Assembly: GCA_010909165.1 (NCBI GenBank)
Contig: MU008155.1
Span: forward strand, 1,674,001-1,738,000
DNA length: 64,000 nt
Direction: 5' to 3'
Source: Anthoceros angustus
Taxonomy: Eukaryota > Plantae > Anthocerotophyta
Positions 23,067 through 63,721 of this stretch are shown piece after piece; within the stretch, counting starts at the first letter, position 1; each line of letters starts with the position of its first letter. The position numbers and the translations under genes are program-made. The notes under the pieces were generated by a model. That model had not been told where the DNA came from. It saw only the letters and a list, made by a program, of their open reading frames with translations, and did no database searches.

Positions 23067-25936
23067 TCACTCTGGTTGGTAAGAAGGATGCTGTTGGAAA
23101 GACAACTGCTGCTGCAGGTGCTGCAACATATTAGGCTGGTGCATTGGTTGCCACAGGGGCTGCTGGTGATGCTGTTGAGCCGCAGCAGTCATGGATTGCA
23201 GGCTTGCATACGGTTTTGAATCGAGATTGACTGGAGAATCTAAAGGTGCTGTGTCCCCGCTCAGTTTGACCTCCAGCTTTTTGCCCCGAGGTGTTACGAC
23301 CTGTCTTCGTTTAGACGTATCCAACTGTTGCTGTAGGTTCTGCTTATTCAGCTGACCTAACATTGAAGTGGAGAGCTGACGCTGTAGCTGCTGTGGATAG
23401 CCCTGTACACCATTCAAAGACGAAGCAAACTCAGTCAAAGGGAGACGAACCGGCAGGGGAATTACTGCGCTGTTTTGTCATGATTCTGCAGCAAACGAGG
23501 TCCGTCGAAATCTACCTGATGAACTTGCAGTGGAGGGAGTACTTGTTGCACTTGTTTTCTCCTCTGCAGGAGCTGCTGCTGCTGCTGATGTTGCTGTTGC
23601 AGTTGTTGCTGTTGTTGGTGCTGCTGCTGCTGCTGTGGATGCTGTGGATGCTGTGGATGCTGCTGCTGCTGTTGTGGATGCTGCTGCTGCTGCTGTGGAT
23701 GCTGCTGCTGCTGCTGCTGTGGATGCTGCTGCTGGCTATGATGATCCTGAGGACCAACACCGGATGAAGTCTTCATGTACTCCAATAGCTCCTGGATGGA
23801 CCTGCATGATTGTACAGCATGCAAAGGATGATCAGCCGCAGAATGTTCGCACAAGGTAAGAAGGCGTAGGAGGGTTTTGAGATCAAAGAAATCAACAAGC
23901 AAATTTTAGAGCCACATACCCACCCCCGGCAATTTGCATGTACATCCTTAACAGTTCCATTTGTGAACATTCGTTGCCATATCTATCTACCAACATCCTC
24001 AGGTTGCTTCCGAGTTTCTTCACAAAAACGCAGACGAGCTCACAAAGGGTGTCCAGAGACCCTTCCTTCAAGCCCTCGTACCCACTAGTAGCCACAATCT
24101 TTACTATTGTCTGCTTCATCATGGCCTGTGCCCCCCGCTCAGACAAACCCGTCTTCTTCACAGCCCCTTTGGCATCGCCTGAAACTGGCAAGGATTCGCA
24201 ATTGGCAGTAGACACATCAGCACCAGGACCAAGAATCAGACGACTCTTTAAACCAAAGCTTGCCTCGCCATCGGACAGCCTGCGTGTCTGCTTCAAGCTT
24301 GCCCACGGGGCCTTGTCATTGACATTGTCCATGACACTGTTAGCTGGAACAGGATTATCTGGGACACAATTAGCAGGGAACATGAATTCTGGGAAAAAGA
24401 CTTCAGCTTCCTCAGCATCAGAGTCCATCTCCAACTTCACAGCTGAGCCAAAAGCATCGATCCGTTGCACAGGATTGAAGAGCGTGCTTCCTGATCCTCC
24501 AGTTCTCTGTGTATCAGCTTTCCGCTTGTTGGTCACTTTTGAATAATATTCCACATACTTGGCCATTCCTTTAGGTGTCCGGACTAAAGCCTTCTGATCT
24601 TCAAAAGGAAGTTTCTGCTCAGCAATTCGGTTTGCCAACCTACCCATTCTCTCCATTAACTGCGATTTTTGCCATTTGTCATACCACAGTTCAGCACCAT
24701 CCTCGTTGTCAGCAAGCCTGGTCCCAGAACTCATCCCTGTCAAATCAAGTACGATAGATAATAAAACCGTAGGTGACACACTAGTTGATAAGGCAGGCTT
24801 GAGTACCGCAATCCAAGATACTCTAACTTTCAAGGAAAGTAAGCTATCATATATTCAACAAACATAGATTTAAACCAAAAACCTAAGAAAACGTGCATAG
24901 GCAGATCATAGAAGGAGAACCAAACTGAAATTCACCATCTGCAGGATTCCAAGTGATCTCCTTCACTTTCGCAAGCGATACCTCTGTAGTGTTCTGCAGA
25001 AACCCCTTATATCTGGTCAGAAAACAATGCCAGATGTGGCATATCTAACCTATGGTCAAGGCAGATCTCACAGGCCTCACTGCCTACAGTAATTCGTACA
25101 GCATCAATATTTGAAGGATAGTTAAGCCTGCTCCTTGCATTGTCAGTCGGCCACCTTTGCCTCTCACTCCCATACCTGAAGCCAACCAGTAGAGATTTCT
25201 CAGCATCAACGTTACATACAGCAACCGCAAGTGCAAAGAGATAATTCCGAAGAATGATCACATATTCACACCTTGCGCTATCGTGAATAGGGTCAAGCCC
25301 ATGCTGTCAAAGGAGACCTCCACATTACTTCCACGGATTGCCAGCGAGCCGAACAAGGCCACTAAGAACACACTAAAAGCAAAGAAAAAATAATAATCTT
25401 TACACCAATTACGGTACACAAACCTGTGCTTGCAAAGCAGCCAAGGCAGCTGATCCTCCGGCTTGAAGTCGACACCAATCCTCCGCATCCTGCTCCAAAG
25501 TAAAGTAGATGCTATCGGGATGCAAGTGAAAATCTGTGCACCGAACCACCTCAGATTAGCGTAACCACCCTATGACACCCCGACGAGGTACTCGATCATC
25601 AAAAGAATAATGCCGAGCTTCCGTCAGGAATCTGAGAAGGGGAGCCAATTAACTTCATAACTGCGGGATTCAAGGCGGTAGCTGGTCACCTGGAGACTGC
25701 ACGAACAGGGCTGACGATGCTTTATCAAACAACAGGGCTCGCACGCGTAATTGCAGCCTCAAGCTATCCTGGGAGCTGGATTTGGAAGCCATGAATGCAA
25801 GCCAAGCCGGAAGAGAAGCCATGTGAGGCTTGAGCAGACCATAATCTGTATCTCCCAGCCATGTTCGCCATGCCGCAGACGCCTCGAGCTTCTGTGCCAG
25901 CTCATACCCGCTTCCGTCCTCGCCCAGCATAGCCAT
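23067..25936 (-). CDS. At5g65540-like protein with bromodomain-associated (BTP) histone-fold domain and Gln-rich C-terminus, multi-exon
   Basis: N-terminus MAMLGEDGSGYELAQKLEASAAWRTWLGD...LRLQLRVRALLFDKAS. Histone-fold-like QAMMKQTIVKIVATSGYEGLKEGSLDTLCELV...KLGSNLRMLVDRY. Poly-Q/QQHP tail. The 3' end is uncertain. Confidence 0.75.
23565..23740. repeat. Coding CAG-rich microsatellite (poly-Q with QQHP units)
   Basis: (GCT)n runs interrupted by GTGGAT on the + strand. Confidence 0.9.
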
Positions 25937-27720
25937 AACCAGACACGAAAATTGTTAGGTTAAATGGGAAAAAAGGGCTAGGAACGTCTATGTATCTTCA
26001 CAGAGCCCTGTTCGTTACACAGGTCTCCAGGGCTGAGCCTCCAGGCGATAAGCGTATGGCATACCCATCGGGACAAGGAACCGGAAGAGCCTCCCCTAAG
26101 ACTTTCCGAAGTTTTCGGAAGGAGCATTGCCACGTGGCTGATGCCTTGGCTGGGCTGGGTGGGCTGCCGCGGTCGGATCGTGCCCCGGCCCTGCCGTCAC
26201 ACCCACTTTGTATTCTGCAGTCTGCAGTCTGCAATCCAACCACTGCAAGGATCATCCGGCGACGTTTGTATATAGAGCAGCCACAGATACTCCCTGACTC
26301 ATCCTTGTGGGTGACATGCACAGGCCCCTGACTTTGGCAAGATTGCAGGAAGCTGGTTAAGTCCATGGGAGCAGGACACATCCATGACAAACTCTGACTG
26401 TCTGATGCTGGCATGGCTTACAATGTAATGTCTGTAGTGAGCCTCCATCATTTCGGAAAAACCACAGCACATACACCTGCAGTGCACTAGTCCTCATCCA
26501 CCCGCCCTCAATGACCAGGACTCCGAACGCAGTATCCAGACTGAGTATCCTATTACCCCCGCTGCGCATAAAAAAGCACGAGCCTACCCCAGACCTCCCA
26601 CACAGTTGACGCCTTGCGCTTTTCTAAGTAGCGAGATGACGGGATGTGGCAAGTGCAGCGGCAAGGAGGTAGTGTCTCGCTCAGTCAAGGCAGGGCTGCA
26701 ATTCCATTTAGGCAGAATTTCATTCTATCTCGCAGCTGTCCTGGAATATCATGCAGCTGAGGTGTGCAGGAAGCCATTGGAGGGTACCTGCTGAAGACTT
26801 TTGCGGGCAACATCATGCCGTGCATTTCCCCAGATTTCAATTTTTCCATACACAACAAGCGCATAATGTCTGGGCACTATGGCATCCCTGTCACCACAGT
26901 CACAGACAAAATGTCACGGAATGCCAAGTGACAATACATAGCAGTATGGCAAGTATCAAGGCATTTACTGTAACCGCATGGGTTTTGGCCATTCTGCCAG
27001 AACTTGACGGCCACCTCACAGTTCACCATACATTTTCAATGCGTGGCACCAGGCAGCCCAGAAGCAGCACCCATAGTGGAATGAAGGGGTGCTGCCCTCG
27101 CACGTTTTGGGGAAGCTATGATCCTCAATCTTGCCAAATACAGGTAGGGGCAGGGATCACCTAGGTCAATATGCCTACAACTATACACGCTGCGATGTAG
27201 CAACAATCAGAACAGTGAGGTCACATGATGGCAAAATGTTGCAAGACACAGGGGCGGATAATCTAAATCTCTTGTCTATATGACAGAGCCGTTGCCAAAG
27301 GTGACACGAAATAGGGGCAGAGACTATCTGCAGATTTCTTCACACCACATGCTTTGTCTGCATGTTGTCAAACACATGCGTGCACTTTTCAGTTCAACAA
27401 ATGTTGCATATGGTCAAGGTCAGCACGTTGTGAAAACAGAGACGGGGAGTCTGCAGAGTGTGTGTGTGTGTTTCTCTAGTGGAGAGCTTTGAAGGCCGGG
27501 TAGAGAGCTAAGCACCTAGCGCAAGCAAAGATGGGGAGCTCGCTCCGAATGACCTCTCTTATAAACACTCTTTGTTGACTCGTATCATCAGTAAAGAGCA
27601 GCAGTAGAGTAAGATTGAGCGAGTTGTGAGATTGTGCATGCTTTTGGGTCAGGAGTGAATTGGCGAGATCCTAGGCCGTTGGGAAGCCAACAGTTGTGGC
27701 TTTTTTACCATATACTGAAT

Positions 27721-28973
27721 ATGGCTATCATGACGAATCATGCACCCTCACAAGAGGAGCTTTCTCCTAAAGCAAAAGGAGGAAGACTACGATGTTGTAT
27801 ATTGACGATAAAAAGCAACGAAGATGACATTTTCAAAACGAAACCAGGACTCCTAAAGAAGGCACAAGAGCTTTCCCAAATGTGTGGTGTGGAACTTGCC
27901 GTATGGTGCAATCGTAATGCCGATAAAGAGTTTAGAAGAATATGACGTGAGCTTTCAATGGAGTAGTACGACCTAGACAATGAAGAAAAGACGAGAACGG
28001 AAGGAAGAACGATAAAACGATAATGGAAAGATATGCGTGAGTCAAGAGACAAAAGAGAAAAAATTGAATGTTCTTTCACTCACGCAACAACTTATGAAAA
28101 AGAGGCAAGAGAACTCGAAAATGCAAGGTAAGGACTCTTATTGTTAAATATGCCCATGATTTTCTTTATGTTTTACTTTTCAAAAGAAAGTTTTCATAAA
28201 TGGCTTTAATAATCATTCTAATCAAAATACGAAACGTCCTCGAAATAATAACAAAATGTTGAAGAAAAGTATAATGAACGGATGGAAGCACACATCCAAA
28301 ATTTGAGACGAACGTCTGCGCTTTGAATTAGCGCCACGACGGCAACCGATGCAACCATTCGAGAACGCCAATACAATGGAAATGAGAATAGCATGAATTG
28401 GGGCAAAGTGGTGTGCCGTGCAATGTCAAGAACCCTTCAAAACTATGTTGGCCAATACAATGCAAATGACATTGACAATAATAGCATGAATTGGGCGCAA
28501 AGTGGTGTGCCAATGCAATGTCAAGAACCCTCTAAAACTATGTTGGCGATATAATGCAAATGACATTGACAACAATAGCATGAATTGGGGCAAAGTGGTG
28601 TGCCAATGCAATGTCAAGCACCCTCTAAAACTATGTTGGCCAATACAATGGCAATGAGAATCAAAATAACGACATGAATCGATCCCTAGACAATTTGCGG
28701 TGGTCGAATCGATCCCCGCACAATTTGCAAAACGAGTTGTATAATATCAATGAGGTTCCAAATCACAACACAACCACAATATTTGAAAGGGGTGTAAGGT
28801 TTGATGAGTTAGAGGAACCGTTATCTAGATGGAGTCATATGGAACACAACTTTCAAGGAGAAGAACTCGCATCTAGAAAAGATAGTTCAATCTTCACCCA
28901 ATGAAAATACACGGAGTGAGGATTTTGGTTATAATGATGAAGAATTTCAACTCATGGGACAGATTCGCCTTAA
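27721..28973 (+). CDS. Type-I-like MADS-box gene, copy 1 (three 96-bp repeats; frameshifted as assembled)
   Basis: Cross-copy reconstruction: KRRKTTMLYIDDKKQRKMTFSKRKTGLLKKAQELSQMCGVELAVWC, then KTIMERYATVSQETKEKK, a GTAAGG donor, repeats, and ...EDFGYNDEEFQLMGLYSP*. Confidence 0.75.
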
Positions 28974-29871
28974 GATTAAGTTGGTCTCACCCATGATTAT
29001 TTAATTTACAGCAAATATAGAAATATCGGTTGAAGAAGCCATGATAAAACTAGATTTTACCATGAAATTTGATTCAATATTTTGATATAATAAAAAATTA
29101 TATGGTTCATCATCATATTTTCTTATTTTGAGTAGTTTATGAAACTCGCACAAGAAAAGAAAAAAAGATGAGTAGTTACCTAAGCCCCGAGTACTAGGGG
29201 GCAATACAACGCTTTGGTGATGCAACATTGAGTGCAAAAGAGAGGGCACGAAATCACCAGATGGGATGTTAGATCCACATTGGGTGACATTGGAAGGTGG
29301 ATATCCATAAAGGATGATATCCTACATGTTCTCTCGATATGTTGGCTATCACCGAGGACAATGATCTTCTTCCCGTGGGAGAGAATTTGTGAGGGCTAGC
29401 CATGCATCAAAGGCATGCAAGCCACGGATCTAGTTTAGTAAGTTATGTGGTTAGTGGTAGTGAGGCTTTGCTTAGAGCTTAATTAAGCTAGTCTACCGTA
29501 GGCGCTACTTAATTGGGGATGAAGTAAGCCTCCTATTTAAGGGATGTGGCTAGCTCTAGAGAACAAAATTCCTAGCACTGTGCCACGTGGGACTGGGAAG
29601 CCTAGAGGCTGGGGAGCCTAGAGTGTGTGTGTGTGTTTCTAGTGGAGAGCTTTGAAGGCCGGGTAGAGAGCTAAGCACCTAGCGCAAGCAAAGATGGGGA
29701 GCTCGCTCGAATGACCTCTCTTATAAACACTCTTTGTTGACTCGTATCAGAAGAGCAGCAGAGAGTAAGATTGAGCGAGTTGTGAGATTGTGCATGCTTT
29801 TGGGTCGGAGTGAATTGGCGAGATCCTAGGCCGTTGGGAAGCCAGCCAGGCTTTTTTACCATATAACGAAT

Positions 29872-31317
29872 ATGGCTATCATGACGAATCATGCACCCTC
29901 ACAAGAGGAGCTTTCTCCTAAAGCAAAAAGGAGGAAGACTACGATGTTGTATATTGACGATAAAAGCAACGAAAGATGACATTTTCAAAGCGAAAACGGA
30001 CTCCTAAAGAAGGCACAAGAGCTTTCCCAAATGTGTGGTGTGGAACTTGCCGTATGGTGCACGGTAATGCCGATAAAGAGTTTACAAGAATATGACGTGA
30101 GCTTTCAATGGAGTAGTATCTTGACCTAGACAATGAAGAAAGACGAGAACGGAAGGAAGAACGATAAAACGATAATGGAAAGATATGCGGTCATGAGTCA
30201 AGAGACAAAAGAGAAAAAAATTGAATGTTCTTTCACTCACGCAACAACTTATGAAAAAAGAGGCAAGAGAACTCGAAATGCAAGGTAAGGACTCTTATTG
30301 TTAAATATGCCCGTGATTTTCTTTATGTTTTACTTTTCAAAAGAAAGTTTTCATAAATGGCTTTAATAATCATTCTAATCAAAATACGAAACGTCCTCGA
30401 AATAATAACAAAATGTTGAAGAAAAGTATAATGAACGGATGGAAGCACACATCCAAAATTTGAGACGGAACGCGCTTTGAATTAGCGCCACGACGGCAAC
30501 CGATGCAACCATTCGAGAACGGCCAATACAATGGAAATGAGAATAGCAGCATGAATTGGGGCAAAGTGGTGTGCAGCAATGTCAAGAACCCTTCAAAACT
30601 ATGTTGGCCAATACAATGCAAATGACATTGACAATAATAGCATGAATTGGGGCAAAGTGGTGTGCCAATGCAATGTCAAGAACCCTCTAAAACTATGTTG
30701 GCCGATATAATGCAAATGACATTGACAACAATAGCATGAATTGGGGCAAAGTGGTGTGCCAATGCAATGTCAAGAACCCTCTAAAAACTATGTTGGCCAA
30801 TACATTGCAAATGACATTGACAATAATAGCATGAATTGGGGCAAAGTGGTGTGCCAATGCAATGTCAAGAACCCTCTAAAAACTATGTTGGCCAATATAA
30901 TGCAAATGACATTGACAATAACAGATGAATTGGGGCAAAGTGGTGTGCCAATGCAATGTCAAGCACCCTCTAAAACTATGTGGGCCAATACAATGGCAAT
31001 GAGAATCAAAATAACGACATGAATCGATCCCTAGACAATTTGCAGGTCGAATCGATCCCCGCACAATTTGCAAAACGAAGTTGTATAATATCAATGAGGT
31101 TCCAAATCAACACAACCACAATATTTGAAAGGGGTGTAAGGTTTGATGAGTTAGAGGAACCGTTATCTAGATGGAGTCATATGGAACACAACTTTCAAGG
31201 AGAAGAACTCCGCATCTAGAAAAGATAGTTCAATCTTCACCCAATGAAAATACACGGAGTGAGGATTTTGGTTATAATGATGAAGAATTTCAACTCATGG
31301 AATTGTATTCGCCTTAA
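29872..31317 (+). CDS. Type-I-like MADS-box gene, copy 2 (five repeats; frameshifted as assembled)
   Basis: Same structure as copy 1, with different indels. Confidence 0.75.
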
Positions 31318-32214
31318 GATTAAGTTGCTGGTCTCACCCATGATTATTTAATTTACAGCAAATATAGAAATATCGGTTGAAGAAGCCATGATAAAACTAG
31401 ATTTTACCATGAAATTTGATTCAATATTTTGATATAATAAAAATTATATGTTTCATCATCATATTTTCTTATTTTGAGTAGTTTATGAAACTCGCACAAA
31501 AAGAAAAGATGAGTAGTTACCTAAGCCCAGTACTAGGGGCAATACAACGCTTTGGTGATGCAACATTGAGTGCAAAAAGAGAGGCACGAATCATGTGGTG
31601 GGATGTTAGATCCACATTGGGTGACATTGGAAGGTGGATATCCATAAAGGATGATATCCTACATGTTCTCTCGATATGTTGGCTATCACCGAGGACAATG
31701 ATCTTCTTCACGGTGGGAGAGAATTTGTGAGGGCTAGCCATGCATCAAAGGCATGCAAGCCCCGGATCTAGTTTAGTAAGTTATGTGGTTAGTGGTTGTG
31801 AGGCTTTGCTTAGAGCTTAATTAAGCTAGTCTACCGAGGCGCTACTTAATTGGGGATGAAGTAAGCCTCCTATTTAAGGGATGTGGCTAGCTCTAGAGAA
31901 CAAAAATTCCTAGCACTGTGCCACGAGGACTGGAAGCCTAGAGGCTGGGGAGCCTAGAGTGTGTGTGTGTTTCTCTAGTGGAGAGCTTTGAAGGCCGGGT
32001 AGAGAGCTAAGCACCCAGCGCAAGCAAAGATGGGGAGCTCGCCCGAATGACCTCTCTTATAAACACTCTTTGTTGACTCGTATCATCGATGAAAGAGCAG
32101 CAGAGAGTAAGATTGAGCGAGTTGTGAGATTGTGCATGCTTTTGGGTCGAGTGAATTGGCGAGATCCTAGGCTGCTGGGAAGCCAACAGCAGGCTTTTTA
32201 CCATATAATCGAAT

Positions 32215-33653
32215 ATGGCTATCATGACGAATCATGCACCCTCACAAGAGGAGCTTTCTCCTAAAGCAAAAGGAGGAAGACTACGATGTTGTATATTGAC
32301 GATAAAAGCAACGAAGATGACATTTTCAAAACGAAACCGGACTCCTAAAGAAGGCACAAGAGCTTTCCCAAATGTGTGGTGTGGAACTTGCCGTATGGTG
32401 CACCGGTAATGCCGATAAAGAGTTTACGTAAGAATATGACGTGAGCTTTCAATGGAGTAATCGACCTAGACAATGAAGAAAGACGTGAGAACGGAAGGAA
32501 GAACGATAAAACGATAATGGAAAGATATGCGTGAGTCAAGAGACAAAAGAGAAAAAATTGAATGTTCTTTCACTCACGCAACAACTTATGAAAAAGAGGC
32601 AAGAGAACTCGAAAATGCAAGGTAAGGACTCTTATTGTTAAATATGCCCAGTGATTTTCTTTATGTTTTACTTTTCAAAAGAAAGTTTTCATAAATGGCT
32701 TTAATAATCATTCTAATCAAAATACGAAACGTCCTCGAAATAATAACAAAATGTTGAAGAAAAGTATAATGAACCGATGGAAGCACACATCCAAAATTTG
32801 AGACGGAACGTCTGCGCTTTGAATTAGCGCCACGACGAACCGATGCAACCATTCGAGAACGCCAATACAATGGAAATGAGAATAGCATGAATTGGGGCAA
32901 AGTGGTGCCAATGCAATGTCAAGAACCCTTCAAAACTATGTTGGCTAATACAATGCAAATGACATTGACAATAATAGCATGAATTGGGGCAAAGTGGTGT
33001 GCCAATGCAATGTCAAGAACCCTCTAAAACTATGTTGGCCGATATAATGCAAATGACATTGACAACAATAGCATGAATTGGGGCAAAGTGAAAGCAATGC
33101 AATGTCAAGAACCCTCTAAAACTATGTTGGCCAATACATTGCAAATGACATTGACAATAATAGCATGAATTGGGGCAAAGTGGTGCCAATGCAATGTCAA
33201 GAACCCTCTAAAACTATGTTGGCCAATATAATGCAAATGACATTGACAACAATAGCATGAATTGGGGCAAAGTGGTGTGCCAATGCAATGTCAAGCACCC
33301 TCTAAAAACTATGTTGGCCAATACAATGGCAATGAGAATCAAAATAACGACATGAATCGATCCCTAGACAATATGCGAGGTCAGAATCGATCCCCGCACA
33401 ATTTGCAAAACGAGTTGTATAATATCAATGAGGTTCCAAATCACAACACAACCACAATATTTGAAAGGGGTGTAAGGTTTGATGAGTTAGAGGAACCGTT
33501 ATCTAGATGGAGTCATATGGAACACAACTTTCAAGGAGAAGAACTCCCGATCTAGAAAAGATAGTTCAATCTTCACCCAATGAAAATACACGGAGTGAGG
33601 ATTTTGGTTATAATGATGAAGAATTTCAACTCATGGGACTGTATTCGCCTTAA
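32215..33653 (+). CDS. Type-I-like MADS-box gene, copy 3 (five repeats; frameshifted as assembled)
   Basis: Same structure. KMTFSKR is visible in ORF 32215..32409. Confidence 0.75.
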
Positions 33654-34531
33654 GATTAAGTTGCTGGTCTCACCCATGATTATTTAATTTACAGCAAATA
33701 TAGAAATATCGGTTGAAGAAGCCATGATAAAACTAGATTTTACCATGAAATTTGATTCAATATTTTGATATAATAAAAATTATATGTTTCATCATCATAT
33801 TTTCTTATTTTGAGTAGTTTATGAAACTCGCACAAAAAGAAAAGATGAGTAGTTACCTAAGCCCCAGTACTAGGGGCAATACAACGCTTTGGTGATGCAA
33901 CATTGAGTGCAAAAAGAGAGGGCACGAAATCACCGAGTGCGGTGGGATGTTAGATCCACATTGGGTGACATTGGAAGGTGGATATCCATAAAGGATGATA
34001 TCCTACATGTTCTCTCGATATGTTGGCTATCATCGAGGACAATGATCTTCTTCGTGGGAGAGAAATTTGTGAGGGCTAGCCATGCATCAAAGGCATGCAA
34101 GCCTGGATCTAGTTTAGTGTTATGTGGTTAGTGGTTGTGAGGCTTTGCTTAGAGCTTAATTGCTAGTCTACCGTAGGCGCTACTTAATTGGGGATGAAGT
34201 AAGCCTCCTATTTAAGGGATGTGGCTAGCTCTAGAGAACAAAATTCCTAGCACTGCCACGAGGACTGGAAGCCTAGAGGCTGGGGAGCCTAGAGTGTGTG
34301 TGTTTCTCTAGTGGAGAGCTTTGAAGGCCGGGTAGAGAGCTAAGCACCTAGCGCAAGCAAAGATGGGGAGCTCCGAATGACCTCTCTTATAAACACTCTT
34401 TGTTGACTCATCAAGAAGAGCAGCAGAGTAAGATTGAGCGAGTTGTGAGATTGTGCATGCTTTTGGGTCGGAGTGAATTGGCGAGATCCTAGGCGTTGGG
34501 AAGCCAACAGGCTTTTTTACCATATCTGAAT

Positions 34532-35978
34532 ATGGCTATCATGACGAATCATGCACCCTCACAAGAGGAGCTTTCTCCTAAAGCAAAAGGAGGAAGACTA
34601 CGATGTTGTATATTGACGATAAAAGCAACGAAAGATGACATTTTCAAACGAAAACCGGACTCCTAAAGAAGGCACAAGAGCTTTCCCAAATGTGTGGTGG
34701 AACTTGCCGTATGGTGCAATCGGTAATGCCGATAAAGAGTTTATGTAAGAATATGACGTGAGCTTTCAATGGAGTAATCGACCTAGACAATGAAGAAAGA
34801 CGAGAACGGAAGGAAGAACGATAAAACGATAATGGAAAGATATGCTACCGTGAGTCAAGAGACAAAAGAGAAAAAAATTGAATGTTCTTTCACTCACGCA
34901 ACAACTTATGAAAAAGAGGCAAGAGAACTCGAAAATGCAAGGTAAGGACTCTTATTGTTAAATATGCCCATTGATTTTCTTTATGTTTTACTTTTCAAAA
35001 GAAAGTTTTCATAAATGGCTTTAATAATCATTCTAATCAAAATAAAACGTCTCGTAAATAATAACAAAATGTTGAAGAAAAGTATAATGAACCGGATGGA
35101 AGCACATCCAAAATTTGAGACGGAACGTCTGCGCTTTTGAATTAGCGCCACGACGAACCGATGCAACCATTCGAGAACGGCCAATACAATGGAAATGAGA
35201 ATAGCAAAGATGAATTGGGGCAAAGTGGTGTGCCAATGCAATGTCAAGAACCCTTCAAAACTATGTTGGCCAATACAATGCAAATGACATTGACAATAAT
35301 AGCATGAATTGGGGCAAAGTGGTGTGCCAATGCAATGTCAAGAACCCTCTAAAAACTATGTTGGCGATATAATGCAAATGACATTGACAACAATAGCATG
35401 AATTGGGGCAAAGTGGTGTGCCAATGCAATGTCAAGAACCCTCTAAAAACTATGTTGGCCAATACATTGCAAATGACATTGACAATAATAGCATGAATTG
35501 GGGCAAAGTGGTGTGCCAATGCAATGTCAAGAACCCTCTAAAAACTATGTTGGCCAATATAATGCAAATGACATTGACAATAACAAAGATGAATTGGGGC
35601 AAAGTGGTGTGCCAATGCAATGTCAAGCACCTCTAAAAACTATGTGGGCCAATACAATGGCAATGAGAATCAAAATAACGACATGAATCGATCCTAGACA
35701 ATTTATAGGTCGAATCGATCCCCGCACAATTTGCAAAACGAGTTGTATAATATCAATGAGGTTCCAAATCACAACACAACCACAATATTTGAAAGGGTGT
35801 AAGGTTTGATGAGTTAGAGGAACCGTTATCTAGATGGAGTCATATGGAACACAACTTTCAAGGAGAAGAACTCCCGCATCTAGAAAAGATAGTTCAATCT
35901 TCACCCAATGAAAATACACGAGTGAGGATTTTGGTTATAATGATGAAGAATTTCAACTCATGGACCGATTCGCTTTAA
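34532..35978 (+). CDS. Type-I-like MADS-box gene, copy 4 (five repeats; frameshifted as assembled)
   Basis: Same structure as the other copies. Confidence 0.75.
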
Positions 35979-36284
35979 GATTAAGTTCTGGTCTCACCCA
36001 TGATTATTTAATTTACAGCAAATATAGAAATATCGGTTGAAGAAGCCATGATAAAACTAGATTTTACCATGAAATTTGATTCAATATTTTGATATAATAA
36101 AAAATTATATGTTTCATCATCATATTTTTCTTATTTTGAGTAATGTATGAAACTCGCACAACAAAAAAGAAAAAAGATGAATAGTTACCTAAGCCCCGAG
36201 TACTAGGGGGCAATACAACGCTTTGGTGATACAACATTGAGTGTAAAAAGAGAGGACAAAAGGATGATATCCTAGAAGATCTCT

Positions 36285-36750
36285 TTTTCATAAATAAATT
36301 TAGTAATCATTCTAATCAAATATGAATCGTCCTCATAAATAATAATAAAATGTTGAAGAAAAGTTTAATGGATAAGGACACATCCAAAGTTTGAGACGGA
36401 AACGTATGCACAAGAATGTCTGCGCTTTTGAATTAGCCCTACGATGGCAAGGAATGCAACTAATCGAGAACTGGCCAATACAATGGGGATGAGAATTCGA
36501 TAACGGCCAATACAATGGGGATGAGAATTCCAGAACGGCCAATACAATGGGAATGAGAATTGGAAAAGGCTAATACAATGAAAACGAGAATTTGAGAACG
36601 GCCAATACAATGGGAGTGAGAATTCGAAAACGGCCAATACAATGGGAATGAGAATTGGCATGAATTGGGGGGAGAGTCTGGTGTGCCAATGCAATGTCAA
36701 AATTCCTTTAAAAACTATGTTGGCCAATAGAATGAGAATAACCACATGAT
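36285..36750 (+). pseudogene. Diverged 5'-truncated fifth copy (no MADS exon) with an expanded about 30-bp repeat
   Basis: Homologous to the intron and exon-2 part of the units. About five copies of AACGGCCAATACAATGGGRATGAGAATT are followed by one diverged copy of the 96-bp repeat. Confidence 0.8.
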
Positions 36751-39472: not shown

Positions 39473-41531
39473 CTACAGCTCCGTGATGAGTAGTTGCAAG
39501 CCGTACTGTGGCCGGATGCTCTGGACTTGGCCTGGGGCATGCCTGTAAGTTGGGGAGATGGCAAATTGGAAGTGGGTGAGGAGGGTGGCCAACATGGTGA
39601 ACGTTTCCATCAACGCAAACTCCTTTCCTAGGCAGTGGCGCGGACCACCGCCGAAAGTGCAGTACGCCATGAGGTCCTTGCTATAGGCAAATTTCTTCTC
39701 CCATCTTTCTGGCCGAAACTGGTCGTAGTCGTCACCCCATTGCTCTTTGCTCTGATGCAGCAGTGCGATGGGGACCAGAACGCACGTTCCCGGAGCCATA
39801 TCGATGTCCCCGATCTTGTGGGCTGTATGGCACTGGCGGAACACGTTGGACACTGGTGGGTACAGTCGATACACTTCCTTCATGAACATGTCCATCTGTT
39901 GACGACCGGCACAATCCATCCCACTCGTCGTTCAGTCGGGATTGGTCAAGGAGAAAAGACTAACTAAGGTCTGGAGACCTGTCCAGAATGGATGTTTCAG
40001 TACGCTGACCTGAGTCATTTGTCGGAAGGTGTCCATGGTGAGCCCGCTTCCATGGCACACATGAAGCACCTCTTGCCTCAGGCGTTCCTGCCACTCCGGA
40101 TGCTTTGACATGAGGAAAAGAGCCCAGGTGAGGCCCAGCGCTGTGGTTGAGTGGCCGGCCACGAAGATGGTTTTGCACTCGGACAGGAGCTGCTTCCGGG
40201 ACATGGTCGGGCTGCCACTCTTCCAGGCCTGTATCATCATCCCTAGGAGGTCATGGCCGTAGGGATGCTCCTCGTCGAAGCCGTTCAATGCATGTGCTTC
40301 CCCTGCGGCCCGAAGCCGCGCTTCCAAAATCTCCTCCAGCAGGCCGTTGATGTAGTTCTCGCGCTTCCAGTCCTTGGCGTTGCCAGGAGTGGGCAGGAAT
40401 CTGCAATTCAGGGGCCGGAGTACGCCAGTGGGATGAGAATTAAGCAGCCAGCCAGTGAAGATCGAAGCAGGATCATTCCCAGTACCACAGTCGATTGCAC
40501 ACTAGGATGTCTATTGCAGTGGTGATGATTTCAACCAACCTGTATCCTGGAATGAGGGGAACGATTGTGAAGAGCTTCTTCAGATTTCCTACGAAGAGCG
40601 GAGTGATGCTCTCGAAGGCCAGGACTCCCTTGCTCGTGGGTGCGCTGCCGGGCATGATGGCACCGAAGGCGGACCTGGCGATGATGTCCAGAGTTGTGGT
40701 GGACATCTCCATGCTCACCTCCACTTCTGCTGTCCCCCCGCCTTGCGCAATGCGCGCTCTCCATCGGCTGGCGACGCCATCGCTGCAGTCCTTGAAGTGA
40801 TGCAGAAGACCCTGCGATCACGTAATTTGCAATGGCCGGGGCCGGTACGGTCAGCGCCTTTGACGCCAAGAAAGGACCTGATCAGACAGGTCGTCTGTGT
40901 CACCAGTGGTATTCACCTTAAGATACGTCTTCTGGAAGGCGGGGTTGTGAATTTTGCGCTGCTGCTTCCACAAATCGCCATCGGAGAATACCAGGCCGTT
41001 GCCCAGCAGGCTCATCACCAGGTTGCGGATGACAGGCGCTTTGCGGTAATAGGCAGCCTTGGCCACCAGCACCTCCCTCACCAGCGCTGGCTCCGCTACG
41101 GTGAGCATGGTGGTCCATAGAATTTCGTGAACAAACACATTCCCTGCGGCCATTCATCACCGCTACCGGTTTCGAATTCAGACATCGGACCCCCCAGCAC
41201 TGGCGATAATGTACATAGAGACAGACAGGCTGTAGCTGGCTGAGACGATGGTCTTACCGTACTGCTTGGAGAAGGCGCAGGAATCGGGGAGAGTGATTTC
41301 GGATGTGAGCTGGTTCATGGGCACCGGGTTCTTCTGCATCGACTTGGCCAAGGCAGCCGTCATCTCCTGGTTATTGCCGACGATGGGGTGGAAGGTGGGT
41401 CCCCGAATTCCCTGCGCTTCGTACCACCTTCGCCTCTGCCTGGGGACGAACCAGATAGCGTGCAGGATGGTAGCCACCGGGAGGATGACGGCGCCCAGCA
41501 GGATGCAGCATGCGAGCAGAGCGGCCGCCAT
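39473..41531 (-). CDS. Cytochrome P450, CYP72 clan, 5 exons, apparently intact
   Basis: Membrane anchor, QGIRGPTFHPIVGN, GNGLVFSDGDLWKQQRKIHNPAF, TLDIIARSAFG, ECKTIFVAGHSTT, HPEWQERLRQEV, EVYRLYPP, FRPERW, and heme motif FGGGPRHCLG. Confidence 0.93.
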
Positions 41532-41889
41532 TGGGCTGGCACTCTCCTCTACTTGGGGAGCAGAGTGCAGTCAGCAGACCTCGTCTACTGTGCAAAGCCA
41601 GTCGGAGGTGCACGAGATACTGTAACCTGTAGCTCGGTTGCCTGCCTTTCAAGCGCAACTTGAGAAAGAAGTGTTCGCCCTTGAGGCTTCAAGCACACTC
41701 TGCGCTGCACTTATTTGGAACCTGTCAAACTACACGACCACAAAGCCTGCTTGTGGAAATCAGGCAGGAGTTGTGGCAAAGTCTGGCTCGAGTCTGAATT
41801 TGAAGCCAGTGTGCGCAAGCAAGGAAACTCACTCAAGTCCCCCATCGCACAATTTCCTCGTATGTACATGGGAATTCAATGAGCCTGAC

Positions 41890-42073
41890 GTGCAGAGTGC
41901 AGAGTGCCGGGTGCAGAGTGCAGAGTGCAGAGTGCGGACAAGAGCATGCAGCCGGGCCAGGCCTGGCCCAGCATCCGGCCATCCGACCATCCCTCCATCC
42001 CTCCATCCCTCCATCCCTCCATCCCTCCATCCCTCCATCCCTCCATCCCTCCATCCGACCATCCCTCCATCCC
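41890..42073. repeat. Microsatellites (GTGCAGA)n and (CCATCCCT)n upstream of the P450
   Basis: Read directly from the sequence. Confidence 0.9.
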
Positions 42074-42433
42074 TGTGGATGGCGCCGTCTGCCGCCCACA
42101 ACAGACATCCGCACATCCAAACGACGGCTCATGCGAACCCGCACTGAGATGGCGCCGCCGGCATCCATAACATGCCTCCCACGGAAATGGTGTGACCAAA
42201 TCAATGACTTTTATAAACACAAGAGACACGAACACAGGCACATATCGCCAGGGAGACGGCGCGATGGGGCATTACCGGGTACAGACCTATCCAACCCACG
42301 TGCGCTATTCCGCAACACAAACGCGGACGCTATCGGATTCTGGACGCGGACTCTATCAGATTCTGGACGCGGGAATGAACAGTACCTACGGAGGTAGGTT
42401 TGTTGGTACATGCAAGAATGAAGAAGACTATAA

Positions 42434-42517
42434 GGACGGACGGACGGACGGAGGAACGGACGGACGGACGGACGGACGGACGGACGGACGGACGGACGGA
42501 CGGACGGACGGACGGAC
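42434..42517. repeat. (GACG)n tetranucleotide microsatellite, about 20 units
   Basis: Read directly from the sequence. Confidence 0.95.
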
Positions 42518-43163
42518 ATATGTACCGGATTTCCCACTAACCTTCTTCCACCTACTGTATGTACATATGCATTTTCAGAACTCACGTGGGCGACTGTAGC
42601 GCAGGTCGCCAGGTCGTCGTCGTTCCGTTGGCATGGTCTACGCTCTACATATGTACCAAGTCTACACACATGTATGTACGTAGGTCCTTCTCCCGAGTCG
42701 GGTCTGCAGAGCTGGTTACGGTGAAGACGGTGCAGAATTTGTTGCGACTTTGCGACCAGACCGGACTTTTGAGCTCCTTGACTCCTTGTTTCATCCATTC
42801 ACCGGTGAAAGTGGATCGACCATTGGTCAGACGCCAACTCCTTCACGCAATTAGTCAGGACGCGGTTGGGTTACAAGTTGGCTTGGCTCGCCACAACTGT
42901 CTACATATATGGGTCATCTGACAGCGCACACGTTACATCACAGCGGCCGATCAACTCATCACAAAAAGGTACACACATAAAGTAGGGCGCACACAACACA
43001 AAAGAAACGCGGCACGCTCCATAGTTGCAGCCTCCAGTTTTAAGGCCCTGACTCGCCTAAAACTGTGCACAACATGTCTACATGACACAAAACGATCAAG
43101 CATAGGTGCTGATGCCACTTGGACGGGATTTCCAGCGATCGTGACTTTTTATCTGGTTTGCGC

Positions 43164-45778: not shown

Positions 45779-48700
45779 TCAATCTATCTGCTCAAAGCCG
45801 TACGCGATCACCTCCTCCTCAATGTGGATTATCTCTTCTACTTCGACCTCTTCGGCTTCGTAGTCATCTTCGTCGTCACTGGGCTCACCACCTCGGAGCT
45901 CCTGACGCATATGCTTTTCTTCGTCGTTGTAGTCCCTCCATTTTGCTATCCAGCTCTTCCACTCATCAATCATTTTCTTTCGGTTCTCCATGTCCTGAGC
46001 ACTCAGTGCACTTAATGACTCAGCATCTTCAACATCATACTTCTTACTGTACCTCCGCAGGTTCTTGCTTATCTCTGCTTCGTCTTCCGGGGTAAGCAGA
46101 GAAGGTGGCCTTGGGCGCCACAAAAACTGTGCACGAAAGAATATAGTCAGCACACACCACTCAAGCGCCAGGCTGTTTTCTCCAAGGTTCATAACCAAAG
46201 CAGTAGGTCACATACCTGGTAAAATCGATCCCTTGGAAGCCGATAAAGCAGTTTTCCGTTGAAAGCCCAGATGTTAAACCCATTCTCCATTTGGTGTACT
46301 GAAGTCACAGAGGTAGCCACATACCTGTAGGGCAGCACAAAAGGTTGACCGCCAGAAATCAAAAGGCACTCCGCAGACATGCATAAGGCACAAAGTTATA
46401 CCTGCCGGTGGGGTCCCAGTCCACATCTGTTGCCATGAAATGTTCTGCTGTGGCCATCGACTCCAACTCATCGACGTTATAGAACTCAAGCTGACCATTA
46501 TATGCTTTCAAGCCCGCAAGCACAATGAATCGGCCAATAGGTGACCAATAAAGCACATTGGCCTGTTTTCCCTTCAAAGTGGTCAGCTTGGTCACGCGAC
46601 CCACATTGTTTGGACTCCTCATAGAATAAAATGTAACATCTGGACGTGGTCCATCCCCATGGATTATGGCAAAACGATGCCCTTTGGGCTCCCAGGCAAA
46701 TGCAACAATCTTGTCATTTTTGTTCTCCAGCTCCAAGACCTCAATGGGGATATCCCTCTCCTTGATTCGAAAAAGCTCAAAACCTGTATACGTGCTCTTC
46801 TTGGTCTTGGTATATCGGTCAACTTTAACCGCCAAGTAATCACCATTACTTTGCCAATACATCTTACAGTCGCTGACACTAAACAGATTTTTCTGCCTCA
46901 ACTCTTCTCTGCTTGGTATCTGGATCAAACTTACCTGTTGCAATCCAGACGCTTGCCAGGTTACTATCCAAAATTAAAACAGGAAGTCCTGAAAACGACA
47001 CACCTGCAATGAAGAACTTACTCTAGCAGGTTGGTTGCCTCCACCTCCTTCAGGCACAAAAAGTGAGAGTAATGGATCTGTAGGAGACCAGCTAAAATCC
47101 ATGACATTGTCAACCTTAATTGACTTCTTGTCCAGCAGCACCATTGTTTCTGTCTCATACACACTAATAGCATTTTTCCCAATCCGAGCAAAGTACTTGT
47201 CATCCCTTCCTCCAGCCCATCTGCAGGGATAAGAGGGAAATCAGACTAATCCACAGCTACGGAGATTCAAACCTGTAATCTTTTCACACGTTTTTTAAAA
47301 CACCTGAGAGCTGCTACCTTCTCTTACAATACACTAACTAAATTGCAATGCAGGTCTTCACCTCCCTACTACCATCACCCACTTTACCTAAATACAGGCC
47401 ACGACACTCCAGCAACACCACCCGTTCCGCCTGTAGCAAAATCATCTGCACTGCCCTTGAATTCTCTTAGAAGCTTGCCGGATCTCACGTCAAAGATCAT
47501 CAAGGTGACACGCTGCAGGAAAATCACAAAATGAGTCAAGGCAAGCTGCAGCTGTAGCAGCCGGAAACGCCACCTTGCTACAACACGGCTACAGAGAGGA
47601 CAAAGGTTGAAACTCCACGCACATGAGTATCTCGTGGATTGCTGGGTTCATGGCTGCTATAAGTCACCAAGTACTTTTCACCAGGTGAAAAGTCAATAAA
47701 TCTGACCTGTTCGGCACAATAGAGGAATCAACACAGCGTCACAAACTGACTGCAAAAAAAGAATCCAAAGCATAAACAGGTCACCTAACATGGGAGAATT
47801 TGAACCTGAGGGTGAATATAGCGAATAAGTCTGTTGAATGTCTGGGCACCTCCCCAGACTGCTGCTCCTTGCCTATGAATTGTTGCTAAGTATGTGCCCA
47901 AAGGTGACCATTGGACAAAACTTTCTGTCCAATACTGATCCCAAACAACAAGTTAACGAGACCAACGCTTGACTAGAGCTGACAATCAACACCAGCAAGC
48001 TGACAAGAAGGTGTGGACACAAGGAACTCACTGTGGCCAAGGGTCACCATTGGACAAAACTTTCTGTCCCATACTGATCCCAAACAACAAGCTAACGAGA
48101 CCTACACTAGAGTAGAGCTGACAATTACCACCTAACTGCAAAGCTGAAAAGATGGTGTGGACACAAGGAACTCACTGAGCGCTGATAGACTGGTTCAGGC
48201 TTTCCCTGCCTTGCATCATTCCAATACGCCTCAGTCTCAGATCCATAGCGGATCACAAATTGGTCTCGTCCACGCTCGTCAGTCAGCCAGGCCAGCAGAT
48301 TTTCCTGCATGCCACCAGACAAGGTCAAACATGCCTTCTGAAGACATTAGGTAACCCTAGGCAGAAGGGACATACTGGCACTGCATCAACTTAGACGAGC
48401 ACTTACTCCAGGAGCGTAGGGCCTGCTTTCCGGTGGCACCCATTTGTCTGCGACTTTCAAAAACTTGTCAAAATCGTCGAACATGTTCACCGCAAAGACA
48501 TGTGACTTGTCCAATTTGTAGCCATTCGTCTGCTCTCGCGCAGTTTGAGCCTCCTGAATCCACCAATTTTCGCTCATAAAAAGCACCGTCACCCAGCATC
48601 TAAGCCAAAACAGCAAGCTTCAGGACTCATCCCCCGAACCCTACCTGCGGAGTCGCATACTCAATGAAGGCATAACCCTTCGTCTTCCTATTCTCAAGGT

Positions 48701-54904: not shown

Positions 54905-55650
54905 ATCCTAAACATAAACCCTAAAAGCCCGCGGCCGGCCAAAACATGACGGCCCCGCCGAAGCGAGCTAAAACTGAAAAGTCGGGCCCCACCACTGCAA
55001 AATTCCACCCCTTGCCTGAAAACCCTAAAGTTGCCGCCACAAATCCCTAAAATTGTGAAACCCTAAACTTGCCGCAAAACCCTAAACCTATGAAACCCTT
55101 AACCTGGAAGACCCATAACCGTAAAACCCTAAACTTAGAAGACCCACAACTGTAAAACCGTACATCTGGAAGACCCACAACCATAAAATCCTAAATCTGG
55201 AAGACCCGCAACCACAAAACCCTAAACCTATAAAACCCTAAACCTGGAAGCTGGCTCACTGCAAGGCCCCACCGCCACGACCTCCCGGGCCCCGTTGTCG
55301 CGCCACCCCTTACCCGCGCCCAACCCGCCGCACCCCTACTCACAATGGCCCCTAAGTTGCGCCTCTAACCCGCCGCACCTCCTACGTGCCATGCCCCCTA
55401 CCCGCCGTGCCCCCTACTCGCTGTGCCTCTAACTCGCCTAAACCTGGAAGACGGCTCACTATCGGGGCCTGCCACTACAAAACTCCACTCCCTGCCTGGA
55501 AACCCTGAAGTTGCCGCTACAGATCCCTAAACCTGTGTAACCCTAAACTTGGAAGATCAGCTGGCGCAAAATCCTAAACCTGGAAGCCGGCTCACCGCCG
55601 GGCCCTGCCGCCACGACCTCTCGGGCCCTGCTGCCGTGCCACCCCCAACA
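54905..55650. repeat. Telomere-motif (AAACCCTAAA) minisatellite with higher-order duplication
   Basis: About a dozen CCCTAAA/CCTAAA motifs, and 4-5 units of an about 31-bp repeat near 55100-55250. 55000-55080 resembles 55470-55550, and 55240-55310 resembles 55576-55650. Confidence 0.85.
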
Positions 55651-59674: not shown

Positions 59675-60574
59675 TTATTGGCACATTTTTTTTAGTAGGG
59701 GAGCATTCGTTGGACTTCTTCTTTGGATTGGCGACCCTTGGACGAGAGCAGTTCTGGCGGCATTACCTAACATATCTGCCAACCCATGCATCAGGACCCC
59801 ATGACAAATGCTTGCACAATTTGCATGTCTCCAACGGGGAGGGACAAAGGACAGGGGAAGGGAGCGAGGGAAGAGGAGGGAAGGGGAGGCGAGGGGTAGA
59901 GAGGGAAGAGGAGGGAAGGAGAGGTAGGAGGAGGGAATGGGAGCGAAGGGAGAGGGGAGAGAGGGAGGGGAGAGCGAGGGAGAGGGGAGAGAGGGGTGAG
60001 GGAGGGAGGGGGACTGGAGTGAGGGTCCGACTGACCTGCCTGATTGTTGATGCCCAGCTGACTGTTGAATTCGCTGCTGCGGCTGGCTACTTACTGCTGG
60101 ACGCATCTCTGATTGTTGCTGTGACTGACTTTGTAAAGCGATTGGCTGTTGGGACTGTTGCTGCTGTATCTATATCTGTAACTGCTGCTGCTGCTGTGCA
60201 TCCTGCTGTAGCTGTAACTGCTGATGTAGCTGCTGATGTTCCTGCTGCTGTTGCCGCTGTAGCTGCTGCTGCTGCTGTGCATCCTGCTATAGCTGTAACT
60301 GCTGATGTAGCTGCTGCTGCTGCTGTGCATCCTGCTATAGCTGTAACTGCTGATGTTCCTGCTGCTGCTGCTGCTGCTGCTGCTGTAGCTGCAGCTGGTG
60401 GAGCTGCTGCTGCTGCTGTAGCTGCCCCTCCTGGAGGCGATGCCTCTGATCTAGCTGTTGCTGGTCCTGCTGCTGCCGCTGCTGGAGCCGATGCCGCTGC
60501 TGGAGCCGATGCCGCTGCTGGAGCCGATGCCACTCCTCAACCTGCCCCTGCTGTTGCTGTCGTTGATGCTGCAT
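59675..60574 (-). pseudogene. Low-complexity Gln-rich then Pro/Ser-rich reading frame with three in-frame TAG codons; function unknown
   Basis: MQHQRQQQQGQVEEWHRLQQRHRLQQ... continues to ...LLKKMCQ* if the TAGs at 60335, 60287 and 60170 are ignored. Other frames are also open because of the (GCT)n repeat. Confidence 0.3.
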
Positions 60575-61634
60575 AACATGTTGCCTCTGAGCAAGAGTAT
60601 TAGGGTTTAGGGCTCCAGTGTTTGCATCCGCAGGGGAGTGGCCTGTGCAATCACAGCACAAAACCTGGTTAGCCAACAAGAAAACCTCAACGAGGAGATC
60701 GCCAGGTGTGACGGACGCCGCCACAATTTGGAACACCAGTGGTCTCAGGCGCACCAGAAGCGATGGCCCAGGGCGTGGCCTGAAGTACAGCCTGCAGATT
60801 CCCATTCCCCACACGACCAGGCCCATAACGGGCTTCCGCAGCGTCCGCGGCCACACTTTCGCCATTAATATCTCTGTTCAGCCCTGCAGCATAAGCATCT
60901 ACAACAGCACCCGATATGGGCAGAGACGTTCGCTCCTGTACCACGAGAACACCTCTTCCTCAGTACTGCCATGCATTTTTGCGCACAGTCTCCGCAGAGC
61001 CTGAGAGCCCCTGTCTGCGGCACGAAACTCTAGAACACACTCTGTACCTCATTTACCTGTGCCATCAGCTCAGGATCCATAAGCCTCCAGCGGCCAGTGT
61101 AACCCTCAATCTGGCAACCGTGCCACACAATATTCCACGAGAGTCGTCCTGCTGCATGAGAATTGCGCCGGCGCACAAGTGGACCGCGACACCCTGCTGG
61201 GCATGACATATATTTGGGCACCCGCGCAGAGATTTGGTAGGAGCCTCACTTGCAGGACCAAGCGCTTTGTCAGTCTCCCTTCGAAAATTGAAGGCGACTG
61301 GCGACAATCCAAAGCCCTAATGACAGGACGCTGCATTTTCTATAAAACCTTCAGGGTCGATTCACGATTCACACAGACAGTGGAACCTTCAGTCTTGTTT
61401 TTTTTTGTCGGTCGCGATCATTCTGGACAAATCTAGGCAGGCAATGGGAAGGCAGTTCGGATAATGTTGAAGCTGCTGCTGGACTTAAGGAGCTCGACCA
61501 GCAAGGGGCTCTCTGTGCTGGTAGTGAGTGAACCCCGGAGCTCTTGCCATGCTGCCTGTTATCCCAGCAGAGTGTGTGGCCCAGAAGGAACTCGCGCTGG
61601 ACGCTGTTTTCCCGGCCAGACTTTCTCTCGGACG

Positions 61635-62066
61635 TGCCGAATTCCTCCCGAATCCATTGTTTTCGGTGATGCACTCCTCGGTTACACCACTTCCGAATGT
61701 GACACGTTCCCTGGACTGAAAGAGGGCTTTTTATCGATTGAAATCGACAATCTGAAGCGTGTCGTTCTTTTCTTTCTCTCACGACCTATCTGTTCACATT
61801 CCTGCTGGAAGCCAACTTCTAGCTGCCTAGAGAGAGGTTGCGAATTAGGCTGCCGAATTCCTCCCGAATCCATTGTTTTCGGTGATGCACTCCTCGGTTA
61901 CACCACTTCCGAATGTGACACGTTCCCTGGACTGAAAGAGGGCTTTTCATCGATTGAAATCGACAATCTGAAGCGTGTCGTTCTTTTCTTTCTCTCACGA
62001 CCTATCTGTTCACATTCCTGCTGGAAGCCAACTTCTAGCTGCCTAGAGAGAGGTTGCGAATTAGGC
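61635..62066. repeat. 216-bp direct tandem duplication (one mismatch seen) just upstream of COQ5
   Basis: Copies start at 61635 and 61851. Confidence 0.95.
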
Positions 62067-62091
62067 TTCGGTTTAACAAAGGTCGACCGTT

Positions 62092-63721
<1,630 letters not shown>

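Follow-up and report, generated by a model that had tools for sequence, protein, structure and literature searches.

A probably young tandem array of type I-like MADS-box gene units in the hornwort Anthoceros angustus

Why should four near-identical copies of a MADS-box gene unit, none of them open as assembled, lie head to tail between ordinary genes of a hornwort? They could be a freshly duplicated gene, the multiplied remains of a dead one, a product of assembly, or the cargo of a mobile element. The array lies on contig MU008155.1 of Anthoceros angustus (NCBI GenBank assembly GCA_010909165.1), within the window analysed here, a stretch of 64,000 nucleotides (nt) covering positions 1,674,001 to 1,738,000 of the forward strand; all coordinates below count from its first letter. 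The explanation that we favour, with moderate confidence, is a real and very young tandem duplication of a complete MADS gene unit, in which the frameshifts are mainly assembly errors; in their true sequence the copies are probably almost the same, and their DNA is probably methylated.

Layout of the array and its gene

A BLAST search of one unit against the window, Tandem Repeats Finder and a four-way alignment delineate four head-to-tail units of 2.2-2.3 kilobases (kb) at 27458-36255, three of them full and one truncated, which as assembled are about 95% identical in pairwise comparison. The units and an adjoining fragment are as follows.

27458-29622, plus strand: unit 1, 2165 nt, with three internal tail modules (BLAST, four-way alignment)
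29623-31958, plus strand: unit 2, 2336 nt, with five tail modules at 30548-31002 (BLAST, Tandem Repeats Finder)
31959-34293, plus strand: unit 3, 2335 nt, with five tail modules at 32881-33335 (BLAST, Tandem Repeats Finder)
34294-36255, plus strand: unit 4, its 3' end cut at unit position ~1962 of 2328, with five tail modules at 35205-35666
36285-36742, plus strand: older partial copy, 69% identical, covering the first part of exon 2 plus a GQYNGNEN-type repeat of 32 nt

Unit 1 has two tail modules fewer than units 2 to 4 (three versus five), and the final ~150 nt of unit 4 have diverged by substitutions. The fragment at 36285-36742, from which the MADS box is absent, is a dead remnant of an older copy. 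No further copies of the unit were found elsewhere in the window, either by BLAST or by tblastn with 120 plant MADS proteins.

Judging from profile matches and alignments, each unit bears a MADS-box (SRF-TF) domain. Three stop-free fragments match Pfam SRF-TF (PF00319) at or above its gathering score of 26 bits (27619-27942, 26.0 bits; 29980-30126, 26.9; 32321-32428, 29.7), and they align in register with the MADS domains of known structure in SEP3 and MEF2. The tblastn matches of the 120 plant proteins, which had been gathered via a single HMMER match, are confined to the four units of the whole window; in unit 2 they span the entire MADS domain (29929-30054, 44% identity over 43 amino acids), its middle being out of frame. 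There, an out-of-frame KQRKMTFSKRK occupies the exact site of RQVTFSKRR, with MTFSKRK standing for VTFSKRR, and three inserted bases bring the distance from RRK to GLLKK to the canonical 24 residues, with GLLKKAQELS retained.

SRF-TF is the sole Pfam domain detected in 60 stop-free pieces of units 2 and 3, taken from both strands. A K-box (PF01486) was found neither in these pieces nor in a 52-amino-acid piece that follows the MADS domain, the scan being one of fragments and therefore of limited sensitivity. With SRF-TF but no K-box or other domain, the predicted build is that of a type I (M-type) gene, and the MADS domain and the following helix would lie together in one likely exon. Type I genes usually consist of one or two exons, a single one of which encodes both the MADS and the I-like part (PMC10484287).

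Each unit can be read as a gene of two likely exons, preceded by a TATAAA that lies 144-161 nt upstream of the ATG in all units and represents a putative promoter element. The parts are given below, with exon and intron limits that are likely rather than fixed; a slash marks the boundary at the splice signal.

27560-27565, plus strand: TATAAA of unit 1, 161 nt ahead of the ATG, with counterparts at 29722, 32058 and 34388
27721-28127, plus strand: likely exon 1 of unit 1, from ATG to AAG/GTAAGG, encoding the N-terminus, the MADS box (~27776-27933) and the IMERYA region, with at least three frame switches
28128-28186, plus strand: likely intron of unit 1, 59 nt, GT..AG, T-rich, with stops in three frames, as read from the sequence
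28187-28904, plus strand: likely exon 2 of unit 1, encoding the N/Q/E-rich tail, with three ~95-nt modules (28387-28657), a 76-amino-acid open stretch and TGA, and at least four frame switches
29872-30284, 30285-30343 and 30344-31247, plus strand: likely exon 1 (MADS box ~29917-30092), intron and exon 2 of unit 2
32215-32621, 32622-32681 and 32682-33583, plus strand: likely exon 1 (MADS box ~32265-32428), intron and exon 2 of unit 3
34532-34941, 34942-35001 and 35002-35911, plus strand: likely exon 1, intron and exon 2 of unit 4

In every unit the signals AAG/GTAAGG and TTTTCAAAAG/ flank a stretch of 59-60 nt with stops in all three frames, and this GT-AG stretch, which follows about 136 codons, is likely the single intron of the gene. 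Exon 2 is a long N/Q/E-rich region that contains the ~95-nt modules, three in unit 1 and five in each of the others; the C-terminal open stretch of 76-99 amino acids closes with TGA across the units, and an AATAAA lies about 185 nt past the stop codon.

An earlier, sequence-only reading of this locus had anticipated much of this organisation. Its head-to-tail array of near-identical 2.2-2.3-kb units was borne out by BLAST and alignment, with the fourth unit now seen to be truncated, and its MADS domain was confirmed by the three SRF-TF fragments at or above the gathering score. The absence of a K-box agrees with the negative Pfam scan of the stop-free pieces of units 2 and 3, and the helix containing ERY after the MADS domain corresponds to IMERYA, which lies in the stop-free 52-amino-acid piece of units 2 and 4. 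The GT donor that it placed in each unit is present as AAG/GTAAGG, where it would bound the likely intron of 59-60 nt, and the long repeat tail is confirmed as ~95-nt modules, its composition being read here as N/Q/E-rich. A TATAAA does precede each gene, but at the distance given above and not at the ~170 nt first estimated.

Frameshifts, probable methylation and the state of the copies

Whether these genes are alive depends on how their frameshifts are read. The four units were compared over 974 aligned columns, of which 90 are gap columns, 27 hold transitions and 21 other substitutions, and singletons make up 98 of the 138 variable columns; a pattern so heavy in gaps and so rich in singletons is unlike natural divergence. 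The differences are also unevenly placed, variable positions amounting to 27% within 2 nt of a CG or CWG versus 5.4% elsewhere (odds ratio 6.5, Fisher p 8e-18), and the same clustering is found in the 3' part (odds ratio 3.1, p 4e-6). Within the MADS box, the sequence AAACGAAACCGG is given in four readings by the four copies, and the surrounding 30 nt are invariant. Genuine variants between tail modules recur module for module in units 2, 3 and 4, and from this we conclude that a single sequence underlies the units.

The flanking genes show the assembly to be clean beyond the array, their open pieces measuring 313, 152, 189 and 194 amino acids (the last in eIF3b). A tandem duplication of 216 nt x 2 at 61635-62067, which served as a control, has 99% matches and 0% indels; it lies inside a 239-amino-acid open frame (61464-62183) with no Pfam match. 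The frameshifts of the array look mainly like long-read miscalls left uncorrected at methylated cytosines (CG, CWG) and in runs of A or G, within a repeat that could not be polished with short reads. Two published hornwort assemblies were built from R9 Nanopore reads with racon and Pilon, a description that is not tied to the assembly of this window (PMC8075897). If the indel differences are mostly errors, the genuine sequences of the units probably differ hardly at all, with a divergence close to zero, and the amplification is very recent. The clustering of differences at CG and CWG also suggests that the array was probably DNA-methylated in the sequenced tissue. The sequence-only reading had already seen that the units differ mostly by indels, and its proposal of a very recent amplification is retained; homogenisation, which it offered as the alternative, is not, because the indels resemble assembly errors at CG/CWG and base runs.

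Several observations weigh against a young array of intact genes. No copy is open as assembled, each requiring at least 7-11 frame switches. The number needed to keep a frame open is 3-4 in exon 1, versus a mean of 6.2 after shuffling, and 4-8 in exon 2, versus 13.5, which is a modest gain. The MADS box does not lie in one open frame, with about three switches inside it in every copy and in the four-copy consensus, and because the consensus still needs three corrections, real frameshifts shared by all units, as in an amplified pseudogene, have to be reckoned with. At the third correction, a CG/CCGG site, the run required is longer than in any copy. The tail module measures 94-95 nt in 14 of 14 scored modules and is not divisible by three, so that an in-frame module of 96 nt, read as GQSGVPMQCQEPSKNYVGQYNANDIDNNSMNW, requires a G-run to have been under-called in every one of them. 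The GC content steps sharply at both edges of the array, from about 0.50 on either side to 0.40 within 27458-36750. Finally, no close relative was found, a result of little weight because the queries were short in-frame fragments.

The most serious alternative is accordingly that a dead MADS copy was amplified: the frameshifts would be real, the 94-95 nt repeat non-coding, and the units satellite-like and silenced by methylation, with assembly noise on top. The residual corrections, the module length, the many switches per copy and the clustering of errors at methylation-type sites, suggestive of a silenced repeat, all speak for it, and we regard it as unlikely but deserving of a substantial minority of our belief. 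What holds it below the explanation that we favour is the nature of the breaks. Those in the MADS box coincide with CG/CCGG sites and A-runs that are read differently from copy to copy, and for the first and second corrections the longer A-run is present in at least one copy, the CG/CCGG site of the third being the one for which none has it. A consensus rule that always took the longest run repaired one of the three breaks, not those at the CG site. Once corrected, the domain has the exact canonical spacing and keeps both MTFSKRK and GLLKKAQELS. In the tail, no frame but the one that gives GQSGVPMQCQEPSKNYVGQYNANDIDNNSMNW stays open across a module, and it runs on into the unique sequence at either end; this one frame spans the unique upstream part, the modules and the stop, and repeats GQYN.N at the protein level. 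Read in this frame, the tail would consist of repeated N/Q/E-rich modules of about 32 residues.

It is also possible that the copy number is false, the real one being one or two units, or a far larger number, and that the layout of four was put together wrongly from noisy long reads. The array is visibly unpolished, which is in favour of this, but the structural differences between its parts are not of a kind that errors make: the two modules missing from unit 1, the truncation and substitutions at the 3' end of unit 4 and the older fragment indicate a real history and not an assembly echo. In addition, unique flanks are joined cleanly on both sides, and an array of 9 kb can, as is generally known, be spanned by single long reads. 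We think it improbable that the layout is an artefact.

Under the explanation that we prefer, one complete gene unit, comprising the promoter region, two likely exons and the 3' region, would have been duplicated in tandem very recently. Its product would carry an N-terminal MADS domain for DNA binding and dimerisation and a short helix, both encoded by one exon, followed by a long modular N/Q/E-rich tail. Long-read miscalls at methylated CG/CWG sites and in A/G runs would then have created the apparent frameshifts. On this explanation the genes may be intact and expressed, and their number may have a dosage effect.

Origin of the array and its neighbourhood

How the units came to be multiplied is suggested by their junctions. 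A 16-nt motif is doubled at every unit-unit junction (three internal ones), beside a (TG)n run, as in the tandem repeat at 29593-29623, and one diverged copy of it stands in the left flank.

27440-27457, plus strand: left junction, with one diverged copy of the 16-nt motif (G[GA]AGCCTAGAG-like) in the flank (junction alignment)

A doubled junction motif together with a diverged single copy in the left flank fits unequal or microhomology-mediated tandem duplication, and we propose that recombination of one of these kinds, at the short motif beside the (TG)n run, may have produced the array without a transposon. The sequence-only reading had raised the further idea of an element that amplifies a captured MADS gene, which would here be a Pack-MULE, Helitron, CACTA or similar element amplified locally; although the lower GC content of the array and the MADS fragments carried by maize transposons are in its favour, it is very improbable, given that Pfam detects no transposon protein domain (transposase, reverse transcriptase, integrase or helicase) in the 60 stop-free pieces of units 2 and 3 or in the 13 kb to each side, that neither inverted nor long terminal repeats were found around the unit or the array, that the window holds no second locus, and that the head-to-tail junctions have a short motif in common. 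The ratio of observed to expected CpG is alike inside and outside, at 0.72 in the array and 0.62-0.73 in the flanks.

The ordinary plant genes that border the array stand 14.5 kb apart, and no Pfam domain was found in the pieces that adjoin the array directly (25.2-27.2 kb and 36.8-38.5 kb). Upstream, about 3 kb from the array and on the minus strand, a 313-amino-acid open frame at 23892-24833 encodes a Bromo_TP domain (histone-fold, TAF8-like); a (GCT)n/21-nt repeat at 23572-23734 lies immediately downstream of this minus-strand frame. On the other side, about 2.7-3 kb off and again on the minus strand, is a cytochrome P450 gene (39.4-41 kb), of which two intact exon pieces, of 152 and 189 amino acids, at 39476-40501 match profile positions 200-439. 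Further on are F-box and FBO_C matches, at about 43.7-44.2 kb, and an eIF3b gene at 45-49 kb, with exons at 46362-46943, one of them of 194 amino acids, and PAR1 and RRM matches to Pfam also occur in the scanned flanks. The flanking genes are of plant type, and the earlier placement of the host among non-seed land plants is supported. Tandem clusters hold nearly 10% of the genes of Anthoceros angustus (PMC7027989).

The window contains further simple repeats away from the array. A microsatellite cluster at 41879-42520 consists of GTGCAGA x 6.6, CCATCCCT x 12 and GGAC x 21 and yields long spurious open frames on both strands; at 59860-60530, purine-rich (GAGGGA)n and (CTG)n-type repeats yield a 288-amino-acid open frame with no Pfam match. 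Degenerate interstitial repeats of the AAACCCTAAA type at 55011-55245 form a CCCTAAA run, which is the plant-type telomere unit (TTTAGGG)n on the other strand. An Rfam scan of the window gave no matches, and a scan for bacterial-type promoters and terminators was set aside as uninformative for a plant.

Relatives, comparisons and meaning

Although the architecture points to type I, as the sequence-only reading had proposed, phylogenetic support for that assignment was not obtained, the domain falling outside all references in the tree. For this comparison a MADS domain of 57 residues was reconstructed from pieces of the window, with X at one break, and compared locally with the 120 plant MADS proteins; its top single-domain scores, about 40 bits, are to AGL29/61/62-like proteins. 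In a tree of 53 domain columns and 115 references it forms a branch of length 0.99 outside everything, in a set biased towards M-alpha: nearly all references are M-alpha, four are MIKC-type (three of these with a Pfam K-box), and neither MIKC* nor bryophyte sequences are included. It is the great length of this branch that prevented an assignment to M-alpha, M-beta, M-gamma or MIKC*.

Wider searches returned little. A word search with a 108-amino-acid exon-1 piece and a 99-amino-acid C-terminal piece gave no candidates, under a length filter of about 55-190 amino acids that excludes full-length kin. An exhaustive HMMER search with a 74-amino-acid exon-1 piece, a query too short for library-wide significance, gave one match, to an odd repeated plant MADS model. 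In the ESM Atlas, exon 1 retrieved weak SRF-TF look-alikes only and the tail nothing, and neither JGI metagenome contigs (exact 35-nt pattern) nor viral contigs (protein scan) contained a match. Neither form of CArG box, CC(A/T)6GG or CTA(A/T)4TAG, occurs in the array, which therefore shows no sign of self-binding sites. The gene is best explained as a MADS-box transcription factor of type I (M-type) build that is specific to its lineage and evolves fast. Type I MADS genes have been retained in hornworts and lost in Marchantia (PMC8075897), and extensive type I duplication has been stated for mosses and hornworts (PMC13293092).

In its predicted build the array gene resembles the type I genes of Arabidopsis, such as AGL61/AGL62 of M-alpha and the PHERES1/PHERES2 tandem pair of M-gamma, in having SRF-TF and no K-box, and its likely exon plan would match their one or two exons with the MADS domain and following helix in a single one; tandem duplication with rapid birth and death is likewise a property of that family. 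In contrast to those genes, its domain is very divergent (about one change per site), its tail is a tandem series of modules with about 32 residues each, its four copies are near-identical and not diverged paralogues, and its host is of bryophyte grade. The MADS fragments captured by maize transposons share with the array the presence of MADS-box sequence in several copies; the array, unlike them, consists of complete tandem gene units, is not dispersed and has no transposon feature that we could find.

A structural parallel is offered by human D4Z4, whose 3.3-kb units each hold the transcription-factor gene DUX4 in an array that is kept methylated. Common to both is a whole transcription-factor gene in each head-to-tail unit of a few kilobases, and possibly methylation, which for the hornwort array is suggested by the error pattern alone. 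The MADS array differs in comprising only about four units, and the gene family and the kingdom are unrelated.

Type I MADS genes are best known from the development of the angiosperm female gametophyte and endosperm; to our knowledge, little is known of their roles in bryophytes. We speculate, as a long shot, that the copies are intact and identical and form a methylated, epigenetically switched hornwort locus, which would be kept off in the vegetative gametophyte and become active in gametangia, zygote or sporophyte. The type I MADS genes of the angiosperm endosperm, which are methylation-controlled and dosage-sensitive, would then have a bryophyte equivalent, and the locus would be one example of gene-bearing macrosatellites that occur as a class across the genome.

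There is a practical side to these results: gene models in arrays like this one are unreliable in the assembly, and apparent pseudogenes may be artefacts. If the hornwort array is indeed freshly amplified and methylated, it would provide a locus at which the role of type I MADS genes in reproduction could be tested beyond the seed plants, and at which one could ask whether the number of MADS copies matters.

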